Assembly: GCA_038496445.1 (NCBI GenBank) | Contig: JALMLS010000196.1 | Coordinates: 82,040 to 146,039 of the forward strand | Direction of reading: 5' to 3' | DNA length: 64,000 bases | From: Trichosphaerium sp. ATCC 40318 | Lineage: Eukaryota > Protista > Tubulinea | In this document: in pieces, positions 29,301 through 37,754 of the stretch | Layout of the letters: every line of letters begins with the position of its first letter | Position numbering within the stretch: position 1 is the first letter of the stretch | The notes under the pieces: model-generated | The model's input: the letters and a program-made list of their open reading frames with translations, nothing else | Database searches by the model: none | Told to the model about the DNA's origin: nothing | Program-made: the position numbers and the translations under genes

Positions 29301-31056
29301 ATGGCGAAGACCTTCGTTGGCTTTCGCCAAGTTAGACACAGAAAACAAACAAAGAGCCCAAAATTAAGTAGAATACAGCAGTTTGACGCTATCGCCGATC
29401 AGTACGCGCGCTTCACGCCCTTGACCACTAAAGTGCATTTAGTTTAAACATAAAGGTTCTTGATGATTTTTACAACGTGACATGGCTTAATTTGGTCGAT
29501 GCAGGAGCAGGAGCGCTATTGAGACAGTAAGTAACTGATACGAATAGCTTCTAGGTAGTTAAAAAGTAACAAGCACATAGATTCCGTAATTCTACGTTCA
29601 GAGCGCTTAGTATATTGTACCCAGAACATGAGTGGAAACCATGGAAATTTACGTAAGTGACACTTGAAAAAAATTGATTGACATTTATTTCGTTTATAGA
29701 CACGCTCCACATAATCACTGGGAGTCCGTAGAGCATCAAGTTTCGTTTATTAATGATTATGCAAAACGTTACAATATTAAGACTTGTGATGGCTTTTACA
29801 CTGTCAGTTGGACTGACATAAATGAAAATGGAGGAGCTTCAGTGATACATAAGTACGTGTAGCTTTTTCTTTTGACACATTAGTAAAAATAAGGTTTATT
29901 TAATTTTGTTGCTAGATATAATTTTTCAATGTTGAGTATGTTGCGTGCGTTGTGCCCACACTATGACTGGCAAGCTTGGAAATTCGCGTATGTATATTAG
30001 ACGTTTCTAAGACCTGAGCTAAGTACAAATCAGGTCATCACGAATGTCACATTGGGGAGAGCGGTCTCGTCAACACTCCAAATTAAATGCAGTTGCTGCG
30101 TCTCTTGGTGTGAAAACTTTAGAAGATTGGTTCCTAGTTACAAAGGAAGACGTAATCGCATTAGGCGGTAGAGTAGTATTACAAGTGTACGTGCATTTAT
30201 TCGTTACATTGCGTAATTTCTTAAGGCATTCTGGCTCGTTAGAAGCCACATTGACAGCTCTTTTCCCAAAGTTTGAGTGGAAGCTTGGTAGATTTGCGTA
30301 CGTGACTATGACATGGTTGTAATGGCTCATCTATACACTAGTCGCAAACGACTACCATACGCCACGGTTGTAAAACGTAGTGTTTTTGATAGAGTAGCAA
30401 ACTCTTTAGGCATCACAACCCTCTCTGACTGGTATAACGTTCCCACAGATGCTGTATATAGCTCGGAGCTTAGAGGAATTATGAACACGTAAGCTTAGGA
30501 ATGGATATTACAATATACTGACAGCGTTTTATCCAGATACAAGTCTCTTTCTAAAGCCCTTATAGCTGTGTATCCGGAGCACAACTGGCACCGCTGGCAC
30601 TTTTGGTAAAAAGCTACAAAGCAGTTAGTATAATACTAACTAGTTTTTTGCTATAAAGGCGTCAGCATAGAGAAGCTTTACCAATCGGGTATTGGCACGA
30701 ACGTAAGAATCAGTTTGAGTTCTTGCGAAATATAGAAGCAACATACAGCGTCACTAAGGCGACATGGTACTGCAGTTTACCTTTTGTTGTTGAACAACCG
30801 CTCACTACTATATCAAGGCCTAGTGTCTCCATCCAACAGATTTGCAAGTTGGGCGGACACGGTATTCTGTCTTACTACCCTCATATACTATCACAGTACT
30901 ATCCGGAGGTCCCTTGGCGTTGGCAGGAGTTTTCCTCCGTCACAAAGAGATCAAACCAAAGGTAAACTAAACTACTCTAGTTTAATTGAACAAAAAACCT
31001 AAATTTCATACAGACACCTTACATCACGTGCCAAAGGGCTCTTTGCTGGAGCATAA
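29301..31056 (+). CDS. Tandem ~70-aa 'DWY' repeat protein (5 repeats), nuclease domain absent
   Basis: Repeats such as LGVKTLEDWFLVTKEDVIALGG..HSGSLEATLTALFPKFEWKLGRF and LGITTLSDWYNV..YKSLSKALIAVYPEHNWHRWHF; ends KRSNQRHLTSRAKGLFAGA*. Confidence 0.85.
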
Positions 31057-31475
31057 AACGTCCTTAACTGCAATTATTGCCAAGGAAACCTTTCTGACTC
31101 CCAAAAAGTCACACATCGATGTCTATCGTTTGTAGGCTGCGCAATGCAGATCCTAGTTTGTACTGTGCGGAGGACATATTTGTTCCGTAACGAAGGTGGT
31201 CTAACAATAGCGACAACAATCGCGATGAAAGCACACACCCCATAAAAAACCTGCCAGCAACTTGTCAGAGCGTTGTATGCGAATCCGGAATACCAGAGGA
31301 CATTTAATACACAAATCAGAGCCTATTAAAATGCACGCAAATTGGCACATTCGCACCGCCCACGTGCAGCCAGTACAGAAAAATTGTAGCTGTACGAAAA
31401 TTAATAAAAGTCAGTGCTTTTTTTTTTTCTTCTCTTTGTGATTTTTTTTAAGGAGTTCAAACCAAAGCAGCACCT

Positions 31476-33822
<2,347 letters not shown>

Positions 33823-34163
33823 AATCACACAAAATATTCAAAAAAAAAGTAGTGTGCTTTTTGTACAAAGGTGTTATGGTTTAGAATAAATGATTAAGTT
33901 GACGTATGACTGTTTTCTTTCGCTTTTGTGGACGTGGTGTTAAGGTACGTTGGTTAAGGTGCAATTCAAAACAAGGCGATAATGTCAGTGTTGAATTGTA
34001 CAGTGGTAGGTTTTTTTTATTTTCCCCTACAATAGTTTTTGCCGCTTTCTCGGATTTGGTGCGCATTCAGCTTGCATGCTTGCAAGGTACTGTTCATTTA
34101 AAGTAGTTAAGTCTCCATACTGCCTATAACAATGGATTAGGAGTACGGCCTAGATAAAAGTAC

Positions 34164-35056
34164 TCACTGAGAATTTTGTTGTTTTGCAGAAAAGAGTGTG
34201 AGCATGCGATCAATCTGTGGTCTAAAGGTACTCAATTTAAGCTGGTAGACTGACCTTGCCCTATTTTTTGTTGAACAAAATTAGCATCACATGATGTCGA
34301 ATTCCATCGTACCAAGTACGTTCATTGTGCCAATTCACTTGGTGTTCTGCAAGTAAATCTTGCATGTTAAAATTTCCTTCTCTGCGCACTACCCACTTCT
34401 ATAAGCGTTGTTAGTAAGATGTCGTTCATTAATGTATATTACATCAAAGTCCTCTGCTGTGTACTTCTTAGCATGCTCCGGTTTGGGTGGGAGAGCGACT
34501 TCAAGTGGCTTTGGTTTTGCTAAGGCAATCCCTCTCTGTTCGGTCATTTCGCTCTAGTGAACAATTACGAATTCGGAGGCCTAACTACCCAAATGCGTGC
34601 CTTTTCGTTTTCTGGTATGGTATGTCTGTCAGACGCCCACTCTCTCAGAAGAGCGTAAAACGATGCGTCCTTAGGCAAGTCCAAGTTTATTGCTCGTTTC
34701 CTCACCATAACTTCGCCACTGGGGCCACTTTTTAAGTGATTAGGTTGGTACCACAATTTGTGCAAACAATGACAAAAAAAATAAATACGAACCGTTGTGA
34801 CCGTTGCGGCGTCACTTTGGTAGCAGCGCTACGCAAAGGAGATGGTCTTGTCACTATTTTAGTAGGCGTAAAATGTTAGCTCATTCCGGTGTAAGGTTTC
34901 TGTTTGAAAAACAAGCGAACGAGCTATCGTACGTTCTCTTGTGTTGTTTTGGGCAGGATCAGGCATCTGATTATCGGTGTAGTATTCTAACATCTTTTCC
35001 GTCGGTTTTGGCGTGCGACTGCTACGTCGCCTTTCTAGGCGATCTCTTCTTGACAT
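34164..35056 (-). CDS. LIN37: LIN37-like (MuvB/DREAM complex subunit)
   Basis: RKRAINLDLPKDASFYALLREWASD resembles the LIN37 'R.VDL..F.....LY..CR.W' block; C-term DLLAEHQVNWHNERTW resembles the second LIN37 block. Confidence 0.6.
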
Positions 35057-35439
35057 GACGGGTACTTTCAGCTCCAGAAGGTTCGCGGTACGTGTTTTCA
35101 AATAGAAAGCTCTACTTTTCGAAACTAAGGTGTGTAAGTGCCGTTATGGATAGGGTAATAAACTGTGTGAACAGTAATAGATCACCTAATAGCAACTGTG
35201 GCGATTTCAGATACAAGCCATTACCACGAGATGAGGGTCCCGAAATGAGTTGGTGTTTGTGAGAGTAACCGTTTTGAGGCGCTAGTGCGTTTAAAACAAA
35301 AAGAAAGTAAAAGAACGTCTACATTTTCACACAACGACCAATTTTTACACTAAATGCCATAACTGTTTCGTTGCTTACGATAATGAACGCCCTATTTGCG
35401 ATAATGGTTACAGCGCACGGTTTAGCCTTCATTTAACCA

Positions 35440-37754
35440 ATGAATACCCTAACCCGCTCAAAGCTTATAGAAACGCTTAACGTGGTGTCACGGGGTAATG
35501 TTACGCGTATAACACCAAAATGTACGATTATTTTATTACATCTACTCTAACGCGTGTACAAGGTATGTACCGCGCTTACAAGCCATCTGTCAAGCATGAT
35601 GCCTTTACTTCACTGCAACAAGTGTTGAATAACTCTGTTTGCCCTAAACACCGCGTTTTTACAATATCAGATTGGCAACGCATCGATTCAAGAGGCATTA
35701 TGGGTTTTGACGCCCAGATTGACAGGGCATTGGAAGAGTGCGTGTGTCATTATCTTTAACCGCTTACTTACACCGTTGAATAACAGGAGAGAGTACTCTT
35801 TGTACAGTTTAGTTGGCTGGCTAATGCCTGAACACAAATTTCGAATAACTGACTTTTTGTACGTCATTTTTGTGTCAAATTTTTTGGGTCTGATCTCTTT
35901 CAGAGTCGTGTCCCATGGACATTGGACATCTCCCAAGCACCGAAGGACTGCCTTAAATGTAGTTGCACAGTCTAAGGGTGTGAAGGTACTAGAGGACTGG
36001 TACAACTTTACAGGCGTGGATATATTTCGACAAGGCTATGGCTCGCTAATTAATCGGTATTAACATCGGATGTTACCCTCTTTTAAACAATTGTATATGT
36101 AGGTATCAGTACTCCCTTTATGACCTTCTTGTTGCATCATTTCCTTTCTATGAATGGAATCAATTCAATTTTCGAGAGACATGGCTTTCACAACAGCATG
36201 CATGGCTAGATAAGGTTGGTAAGCGTCATGGTATTAAAACCTTATCAGGGTGGTATAATTTCAGTCGCGCAGAGGTATTTGATGTTGTAGATGCACCCAA
36301 GTTTTTGTATGTTCGCCTCTTTCTTCAGATAAATATTTACCCTTCAATGTCAGGTTCAAAAAAACGCCACGGCTTGCTGATTTATTGCGAAGAATCTATC
36401 CTAACTATGACTGGAAAGATTACTTATTCAAGATTGCAGCTATTGGGGCGCATGATGACACCACATTACTACGGGAACACTTTAATGACATTGCGCGAAC
36501 ATTAGGTGTTAAATGTTTGGACGATTGGTATCATATACAGGCTGCTCAAGTTTCTCAAGTTGCAAAACATAGTACATTAAAAAAGTGAGTAAGATTCGTT
36601 TAATGCTTTTATATATTAACACGGCATAGGTATTCTTTGTCACTTGTGAAGGCCCTCAAAGATATATACTCTGAAAAGGACTGGGAGGATTGGAGATTCG
36701 GGTACAAATAAGGATGGTGCTTCGAAGATAACCTCTTATTTAGTACTGGATCACATGGTTACTCTAATTTTATGCGAAGACATAAAATGACTCTTGAAAC
36801 AGCTGCTGAAGCTCTTGGATTAAAAATTGTAGATGATTGGCAACGTATTTCAACTACCCAATTTGGTGAGATGGCTCAACCTGTGTTAAATGCGTTTAAT
36901 AACTCGATGAGAAATGCGCTTACTGCAATATTCCCTGGCCACAAGTGGGATTTAAACATGCCGCTATACCCTCCTAATCACTGGGATATCCAGAGGCGAA
37001 GAGTCTCATTTTTGCGGTCTGTGGAGCAAAAGTTTAATCTCACCAATCCGGAAATGTGGTATGTTGATTTTTATTGACTGTCGTTCTTTCTTACAGTATT
37101 TAGGTATCGCGTGCCTGTTTCGGATATATTTAAAAATGCAAATGGATTACGTCGCCACTTTTTACACGACCTTGAAACATTGCATCCGAACTATGGATGG
37201 GCTTGGGAAAACTTTGGAAGACTAACAAAAAAGGCGACTCAGAAGTACTTTACCGTTGTCATTTGAGTTTCCTTAACCCACGTGCTAGGCGGCTAATAAA
37301 TGCTCTTCAAAGAATTTTACCGGGTGTTCTTATCGAAGAAGAACTCTACATTGGCACTGGAGTCAATGACGCGATTACTGTTGATGTGTTTTTACCACAA
37401 TTTAGTGTGGCCTTGGAGTATCAGGGTAACAAGAACTTTTAATGACAATTTTGCTGAGTACAATTAGGTGAACACCATTATCAAAGCACATTTACTTATG
37501 GTAATCCTGTAAGTGTGTATCAAGCCAGGGATGCAGAGAAAAGAGAGTATTGTGACAATGCTGGGATCACTCTTATTCCAATTCCTTATTGGTGGGACGG
37601 TAGCGCAGCTGAGCTGGCTTCTCGAATTGATGCCCATAGACCAGATTTAAACCTCAGCACCGAGAAGTTGATACCACGACAACCGCAGCTCGGGATTGTA
37701 GAACACAAGTTGCCATTCAAAGGCATGATGGTAACAGAAAGTGCAACAGTGTGA
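35440..37754 (+). CDS. Tandem 'DWY' repeat protein (6 repeats) with C-terminal PD-(D/E)xK (RAP/DUF559-like) nuclease domain
   Basis: Repeats GVKVLEDWYNF, GIKTLSGWYNF, GVKCLDDWYHI, GLKIVDDWQRI. C-term TVDVFLPQFSVALEYQGEHHY...RDAEKREYCDNAGITLIPIPYWWD. Confidence 0.88.

Follow-up and report, generated by a model that had tools for sequence, protein, structure and literature searches.

Symmetric module exons, which have the same intron phase at both ends, are exemplified by the 54-bp exons of collagen and by the 1-1 exons of Ig and EGF modules, and exon shuffling in metazoans is dominated by the 1-1 class. The formation of phase-symmetric exons by tandem exon duplication or shuffling in repeat or modular genes is a general principle (PMC3632108). 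Here we analyze a stretch of 64,000 nucleotides (nt) from the protist Trichosphaerium sp. ATCC 40318 (GenBank assembly GCA_038496445.1, contig JALMLS010000196.1, positions 82,040 to 146,039 of the forward strand), which we call the window, and in it two genes (gene 1 and gene 2) that encode arrays of a 75-residue, five-helix repeat and carry phase-2 introns at recurring positions of that repeat. These periodic introns are quite probably an architecture inherited from one duplicated two-exon unit, and not an active shuffling device.

As in genes built by tandem exon duplication, the introns lie at homologous positions of successive repeats, and the exons between them are symmetric, with lengths that are multiples of three. 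Because the phases at the two ends of an exon are equal and the lengths are divisible by three, modules can be gained or lost without disturbing the reading frame. Unlike the collagen, Ig and EGF cases, the exon class is 2-2 and each repeat is split into two unequal exons; in addition, the host is a protist with introns of 40-60 nt, and each module is a portion of a single compact helical repeat rather than an autonomous extracellular domain. In contrast to exon-shuffled modular genes, there is also no evidence here of exchange between unrelated genes.

At the protein level, the family resembles the FASTK proteins, the apicomplexan HPR/RAP mitoribosomal proteins and the OPR-RAP proteins of Chlamydomonas, in which a helical-repeat array is likewise followed by a C-terminal Vsr-like PD-(D/E)XK domain, and shares with helical-repeat/RAP proteins a large lineage-specific expansion. 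It differs from them in that the repeat is a 75-residue unit of five helices rather than a helix pair of 37-40 residues, and in the conservation of D, E, H, D and K, which are putative catalytic residues. In a published survey, RAP was undetectable in Amoebozoa (PMC8190603).

The DNA of the window is eukaryotic, with a GC content of ~38% and very short GT-AG introns. Both gene models were derived from six-frame translations, breaks in open reading frames (ORFs) and GT..AG sites, using genomic sequence alone, and the repeat register was set with a 75-position hidden Markov model (HMM) built from intron-free paralogs and two database homologs. We use the term position A for an intron in the codon preceding Y..S (HMM 52), where helix 4 meets helix 5; position B for one in the codon following W..W.F (HMM 1), in the linker between repeats; position C for one in the W codon of DWY (HMM 33), which occurs in the terminal repeat only; and position E for one located 10 residues past the last W..W.F. 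Position D is an extra site in the first partial repeat of gene 1, and N1 and N2 are introns of the nuclease domain, in the bracketed codons of EYQ[G] and A[G]ITL, respectively. The long array exon (L, median 153 nt) encodes helices 1-4, and the short one (S, median 72 nt) encodes helix 5 and the W..W.F linker. The features of gene 1 are as follows.

29301..31056, + strand: gene 1, 12 exons and 11 introns of 39-63 nt, all phase 2
29402..29442, + strand: gene 1 intron 1, 41 nt, phase 2 (CA/T), position D
29527..29580, + strand: gene 1 intron 2, 54 nt, phase 2, position A
29653..29699, + strand: gene 1 intron 3, 47 nt, phase 2, position B
29853..29915, + strand: gene 1 intron 4, 63 nt, phase 2, position A
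29988..30033, + strand: gene 1 intron 5, 46 nt, phase 2, position B
30187..30225, + strand: gene 1 intron 6, 39 nt, phase 2, position A, placed by repeat alignment and a GTACGT donor
30298..30341, + strand: gene 1 intron 7, 44 nt, phase 2, position B
30489..30536, + strand: gene 1 intron 8, 48 nt, phase 2, position A
30606..30658, + strand: gene 1 intron 9, 53 nt, phase 2, position B
30767..30817, + strand: gene 1 intron 10, 51 nt, phase 2, position C, placed by spacing and homologous C introns
30962..31013, + strand: gene 1 intron 11, 52 nt, phase 2, position E

The model of gene 1 has 405 codons and comprises a basic N-terminal leader, ~5 repeats of the 75-residue module and a short tail, with no nuclease domain. 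A possible frame-shifted nuclease remnant past its stop codon (31014-31135) was considered and rejected, as neither BLASTP against exon 9 of gene 2 nor the domain HMM gave a match there. Gene 2 (609 codons from the ATG at 35520) combines ~6 repeats with a C-terminal Vsr/RAP-like PD-(D/E)XK domain, against which the family HMM for that domain scores 28.6 bits for exon 9 and 62.6 bits for exon 10. It has eight phase-2 introns within or just past the array and a single phase-1 intron in the nuclease domain.

35520..37754, + strand: gene 2, start possibly at 35055
35055..35087, + strand: putative first exon of gene 2 (MTGTFSSRRFA, resembling MAKTFVGFRQ of gene 1)
35088..35582, + strand: putative leader intron of gene 2, 495 nt, phase 0, which would link the first exon to the array
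35738..35786, + strand: gene 2 intron 1, 49 nt, phase 2, position A
35859..35903, + strand: gene 2 intron 2, 45 nt, phase 2, position B
36057..36102, + strand: gene 2 intron 3, 46 nt, phase 2, position A
36307..36353, + strand: gene 2 intron 4, 47 nt, phase 2, position A, with no intron at the B site before it
36585..36629, + strand: gene 2 intron 5, 45 nt, phase 2, position A, again with no intron at the B site before it
36702..36743, + strand: gene 2 intron 6, 42 nt, phase 2, position B
37059..37103, + strand: gene 2 intron 7, 45 nt, phase 2, position C
37245..37288, + strand: gene 2 intron 8, 44 nt, phase 2, position E, at the boundary of array and nuclease domain
37426..37467, + strand: gene 2 intron 9, 42 nt, phase 1, position N1; it splits the G of EYQ[G]EHHY and is kept in 10 paralogs

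The rebuilt models agree in most respects with a preliminary description of this locus. The latter listed 11 introns in gene 1, all in phase 2, and the same split codons were recovered in the same order (CA/T, CA/A, AC/A, AA/A, GC/G, GT/G, GC/T, AC/A, TG/G, TG/G and AG/A, the slash marking the junction). It also assigned phase 2 to the repeat-region introns of gene 2, which is the case for all eight of those in or just past the array, and it located most introns either directly in front of the Y..S helix or directly behind WxF, which are positions A and B of the repeat HMM. Phase 1 had been given for both the leader and the nuclease introns of gene 2; this is correct for the nuclease intron (37426-37467) and was not reproduced for the leader intron, for which the best putative model gives phase 0. 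All internal array exons of the two genes are multiples of three, being L exons of 153 or 147 nt, S exons of 72 or 69 nt, or fusions of these. The intron donors in the two genes are GTA or GTG and the acceptors YAG or AAG, and the lengths (39-63 nt) match the genomic median of 54 nt.

Background phases were obtained with our own gene finder (dicodon coding scores combined with splice matrices restricted to intronic bases), which was run on the window and on twenty random 10-kb loci of the same genome and yielded 74 non-family genes. Its models are sensible, in that the central exons of the kinase gene of the window and of a metallo-beta-lactamase-fold gene were well recovered. Phases 0, 1 and 2 account for 40, 34 and 26% of 611 background introns (44, 35 and 21% of a strict subset of 215), the median intron is 54 nt long, and 2-2 exons make up 7% of the internal exons. 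The comparison with genome-wide intron phase that had been proposed for this locus therefore sets just 21-26% phase 2 in the background against near-uniform phase 2 in the family. Naively, the chance that 19 of 19 introns are in phase 2 is ~9e-12, but the introns are not independent, being copies of a few ancestral ones. With ~4 independent positions (A, B, C and E), the probability that all are in phase 2 is ~0.002-0.005, and the probability that all share any one phase is ~0.04-0.05.

The two genes belong to a large family. When one exon was used as the query against all six frames of the 70-Mb assembly, at least 47 matches were obtained, and a search with the repeat profile gave 3137 first-look candidates; all of the 150 candidates that were scored matched (E <= 1.5e-10), and so the genome probably contains hundreds of such genes. 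To infer splice junctions in 30 loci, which represent ~25 separate genes, neighbouring ORF pieces that matched the HMM were joined at each possible GT..AG pair and every such join was scored; the loci entered the sample because they resemble one fused exon of gene 2, and the sample is biased to that extent. Phase 2 was found for 179 of 190 junctions across the 30 loci, duplicates included, and, after removal of duplicate loci, for 61/61 junctions at A, 63/66 at B and 4/4 at C. Both window genes and 26-27 sampled genes have introns at positions A and B. By a second HMM, made for the C-terminal domain, E is in phase 2 in eight genes, N1 is in phase 1 in ten and N2 in five of six. Exon length in the sampled paralogs is divisible by three for 31 of 32 L and 37 of 39 S exons. 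Fusion of one or two repeats is seen in many of these genes, which is in part an effect of ascertainment through the fused exon. As judged from the recurring positions and phases, the entire exon-intron architecture is conserved among the sampled paralogs, including its 3' part (C, E, N1 and N2).

A few paralogs deviate from this pattern. In L020 (G000:C69:102482-105637, minus strand), three B introns are all in phase 1, being located one nucleotide earlier in the same codon, and the A introns are in phase 2, so that its single exons are asymmetric (1-2 and 2-1). The arrays of L008 (G000:C160:107073-110354) and L029 (G000:C4:343040-346312) are free of introns and form ORFs of 375 and 397 codons, respectively. 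The nuclease part of L008 retains its introns; here, the loss spared the 3' end, which is the reverse of the usual 3' bias. In L024 (G000:C70:47060-50209, minus strand), at about position 1773 of the locus, an A donor is followed, 98 nt on, by the B acceptor that it is joined to, with no candidate S exon in between, and this half-repeat appears to have been lost or to have decayed in frame. Near-identical copies were also seen on separate contigs, namely L009/L011/L012 (C461, C137 and C117) and L013/L014 (C107 and C288), and these represent either uncollapsed haplotypes or segmental duplications of recent date; small indels at one B junction distinguish the three L009-type copies. A third family member is present on the contig of the window (G000:C159:72886-73095), ~9 kb upstream of the latter, so that genes 1 and 2 are part of a loose local cluster.

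The repeat exons are mutually homologous, since all match the one 75-position HMM, and are highly diverged. Pairwise identity of L exons has a median of 27% and a maximum of 54%, and among the sampled L exons there are no high-identity pairs at non-homologous places that would indicate recent or ongoing exon exchange. For 127 introns at positions A and B, local alignment scores equal those of shuffled controls. Because the repeats are saturated and the introns cannot be aligned, the array duplications are taken to be old, and the sequences of the sampled genes give no indication of recent duplication, recent exchange or introner-like insertion. With a signal this saturated, exchange in the distant past may still have taken place.

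We consider that these features are best explained by a simple history. The ancestral 75-residue unit would have been encoded by two exons, one of ~153 nt for helices 1-4 and one of ~72 nt for helix 5 and the W..W.F linker, with a phase-2 intron at either boundary. The array would have arisen as this unit was duplicated in tandem, which copied the position and phase of the introns into every repeat. Whole genes would then have been duplicated, so that paralogs that probably number in the hundreds came to have the architecture, including the specialised last repeat with its intron C, the intron E at the boundary, and N1 and N2, which interrupt the nuclease domain in phase 1. The changes that followed would have been of ordinary kinds: scattered intron loss that fused exons, the loss of all introns from some arrays, and a shift of B by one nucleotide in one lineage. 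On this account, the recurrence of position and phase is an automatic outcome, because what was tandemly duplicated was an intron-bearing unit. The symmetry of the exons is then a by-product of duplication history and not a demonstrated device for diversification.

Several observations weigh against so simple a history. The phase uniformity that survives correction for copying is mildly surprising, and descent alone leaves it without explanation. Repeats are slightly more similar within genes than between them (28.8% versus 27.3% identity; 4 of 2000 permutations), and reciprocal-best repeat matches between genes are colinear in only 7 of 53 gene pairs, which is about the level expected by chance, the signal being saturated. 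The concerted shift of B in L020 hints that an array was rebuilt at least once by duplication of units within a gene. The intragenic excess, the shift in L020 and the absence of colinearity suggest together that arrays could have been rebuilt within genes after the paralogs had diverged.

Some of these observations also speak for active modular diversification, in which 2-2 exons would be put to use, in the course of evolution or through alternative splicing, so that half-repeats are duplicated, deleted, swapped or skipped and binding specificity is altered. The internal array exons are of the 2-2 class, module number varies among paralogs, L024 appears to have lost a half-repeat in frame, and the B shift of L020 and the slight intragenic excess point to duplication of units within a gene after paralog divergence. 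We nevertheless regard this possibility as rather unlikely. No pair of repeat exons exceeds 54% identity and their introns have no residual similarity; the 3' architecture is conserved; and symmetry of individual exons is not required, because the exons of L020 are asymmetric and the arrays of L008 and L029 have no introns at all. Unequal crossing-over between repeats would in any case keep the frame without introns, and a compact unit of five helices would lose either its helix 5 or its helices 1-4 if a half-repeat were skipped. The preliminary description had proposed that symmetric half-repeat exons serve as a built-in means of diversification; the frame-safe symmetry on which this was based holds, and recent or ongoing duplication or swapping of modules is not borne out, given the maximum identity of 54% and the unalignable introns. 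A stronger form of the idea is that the uniform 2-2 structure is functional and that the cell or recent evolution mixes half- or whole-repeat exons by in-frame skipping, by mutually exclusive use or by intron-mediated exchange among paralogs, which would make the family a natural, exon-level "programmable" binder system. We think this very unlikely; if it were true, it would imply a combinatorial repertoire of nucleic-acid-recognition arrays, some of which aim a Vsr/RAP-type nuclease.

Two further explanations concern the origin and the reality of the introns. They might have been gained in parallel, by introner-like or protosplice-driven insertion at the same target in every repeat. Intron-free arrays exist within the genome (L008 and L029), and the many database relatives that are long single ORFs suggest that such arrays exist elsewhere as well. 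However, the 127 A and B introns share no sequence beyond the chance level of shuffled controls, and both the codons split at A and B (CA/A, AA/A, GT/G, AC/A, GC/G, TG/G and others) and the exon bases beside them differ from intron to intron, so that there is no common target motif. More than 120 independent insertions at two exact nucleotide positions are also far less parsimonious than copying, and we consider parallel gain extremely unlikely. It is scarcely credible, finally, that the introns are artefacts of modelling, with their phases picked to fit the repeats. Two introns of gene 1, intron 6 (30187-30225) and intron 10 (30767-30817), contain no stop and preserve the frame, and could be coding; with no break in the ORF, they were placed from the repeat alignment or spacing and from the introns of paralogs. 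Against this, stop codons or frame changes between the open exons that match the HMM make the other 17 introns necessary, the donors are GTA or GTG and the acceptors YAG or AAG, the lengths match the genomic median, and the same junctions recur in 25 paralogs. Descent from one duplicated two-exon unit is thus the reading that we retain.

For database and fold searches, the intron-free ORFs of L008 and L029 served as full-length proxies, and the exons of the window were searched singly. There was no match to Pfam RAP (PF08373), FAST_1 or FAST_2 among the window exons and L008, L029 and L030 (E <= 1) or among ten homologs (E <= 0.01). More generally, Pfam scans of the exons, the paralogs and the ten homologs assigned no family, and gave merely weak matches to the restriction-endonuclease-like DUF2726 and MTES_1575. 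A sequence search of the PDB gave no match, and we found no paper on this repeat family. A word search returned two relatives, and an exhaustive search of a library of 1.84 billion proteins returned 6882 cluster representatives at E <= 0.001, with 1151 of these at E <= 1e-30. One database homolog was traced to the amoebozoan Cavostelium, and the nearest Atlas clusters are amoebozoan; a search of metagenomes for related loci with homolog P0010 found nothing.

Structural evidence comes from an AlphaFold2 model of homolog P0057 (predicted local distance difference test score, pLDDT, 93.4; predicted template modelling score, pTM, 0.80), which has five helices per repeat and an alpha/beta C-terminal domain. 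This domain matches two mitoribosomal proteins of T. gondii (Z 10.4, for 9i05_Xr, and Z 9.4), I-Bth0305I (Z 9.8), Vsr (Z 9.1-9.3), the RAP module of FASTKD4 (Z 9.1) and a DUF559-like protein (Z 9.0). For the model of a single repeat (pLDDT 90.7), the fold search gave no convincing neighbour, the best being TetR-like helix-turn-helix bundles (Z 4.4). The motif D..(L/V)A(F/I)EYQG is found at the C-terminal end of 62 of the 153 proteins retrieved, and in an alignment of 40 motif-bearing homologs the residues D, E, G, H and D are invariant, with K370 of RD.EK conserved in at least 90%. The Vsr-type motif is D...E-V-D-G-x-x-H, and the D...E-Y-Q-G-x-x-H of the present family parallels it, in line with the likeness in fold between the homolog model and the Vsr, DUF559 and I-Bth0305I endonucleases (Z 9.0-9.8). 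Unlike those enzymes, the predicted nuclease domain is attached to a long repeat array of a eukaryote, and phase-1 introns interrupt it.

The family, whose repeat arrays often terminate in this domain, thus resembles helical-repeat/RAP organellar nucleic-acid binders and is not, by sequence, a member of the RAP, FASTK, HPR or OPR families. From the modelled fold, the architecture and the basic N-termini, its members are most likely binders of mitochondrial RNA or DNA. The N-terminus of gene 1 is basic and free of acidic residues as judged by eye (MAKTFVGFRQVRHRKQTKSPKLSRIQ), and it is this segment that suggests possible mitochondrial targeting.

Two other genes lie close to those described above. 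Between the repeat genes, on the + strand (31600-33820), is a gene for a CaMK-type protein kinase, with a possible C2-like N-terminal part recognized by eye; its central introns have phases 0, 0, 1, 0, 1 and 2, an ordinary mix. On the minus strand is a gene at 34200-34990, and only ~65 nt separate its start from the ATG that may be the first of gene 2 (35055); the two would form a very tight divergent pair. The palindrome CACGTG (E-box) occurs 41 times in the window, compared with 10.6 expected, and none of 100 shuffles reached 41. Examples are at 31361, 31605, 32110, 32351, 33685, 33696, 37279 and 37848, and many copies are in introns and short intergenic spacers; this excess and location suggest a widespread regulatory motif.

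Phase-symmetric repeat exons are a textbook phenomenon, and the present family is a new and large protist example for which no new mechanism is needed. It is an unusually large and clean case in which intron position and phase were copied with a repeat unit and then frozen, with more than 120 sampled introns located at two exact codon positions while the coding sequence drifted to ~27% identity. If in-frame exon skipping were seen, the family would become a candidate for combinatorial specificity. The L020 variant and the intron-free arrays provide natural markers of array growth, and the conserved introns mark both the repeat register and the gene architecture, which could aid annotation of these genes where ordinary gene finders do poorly.

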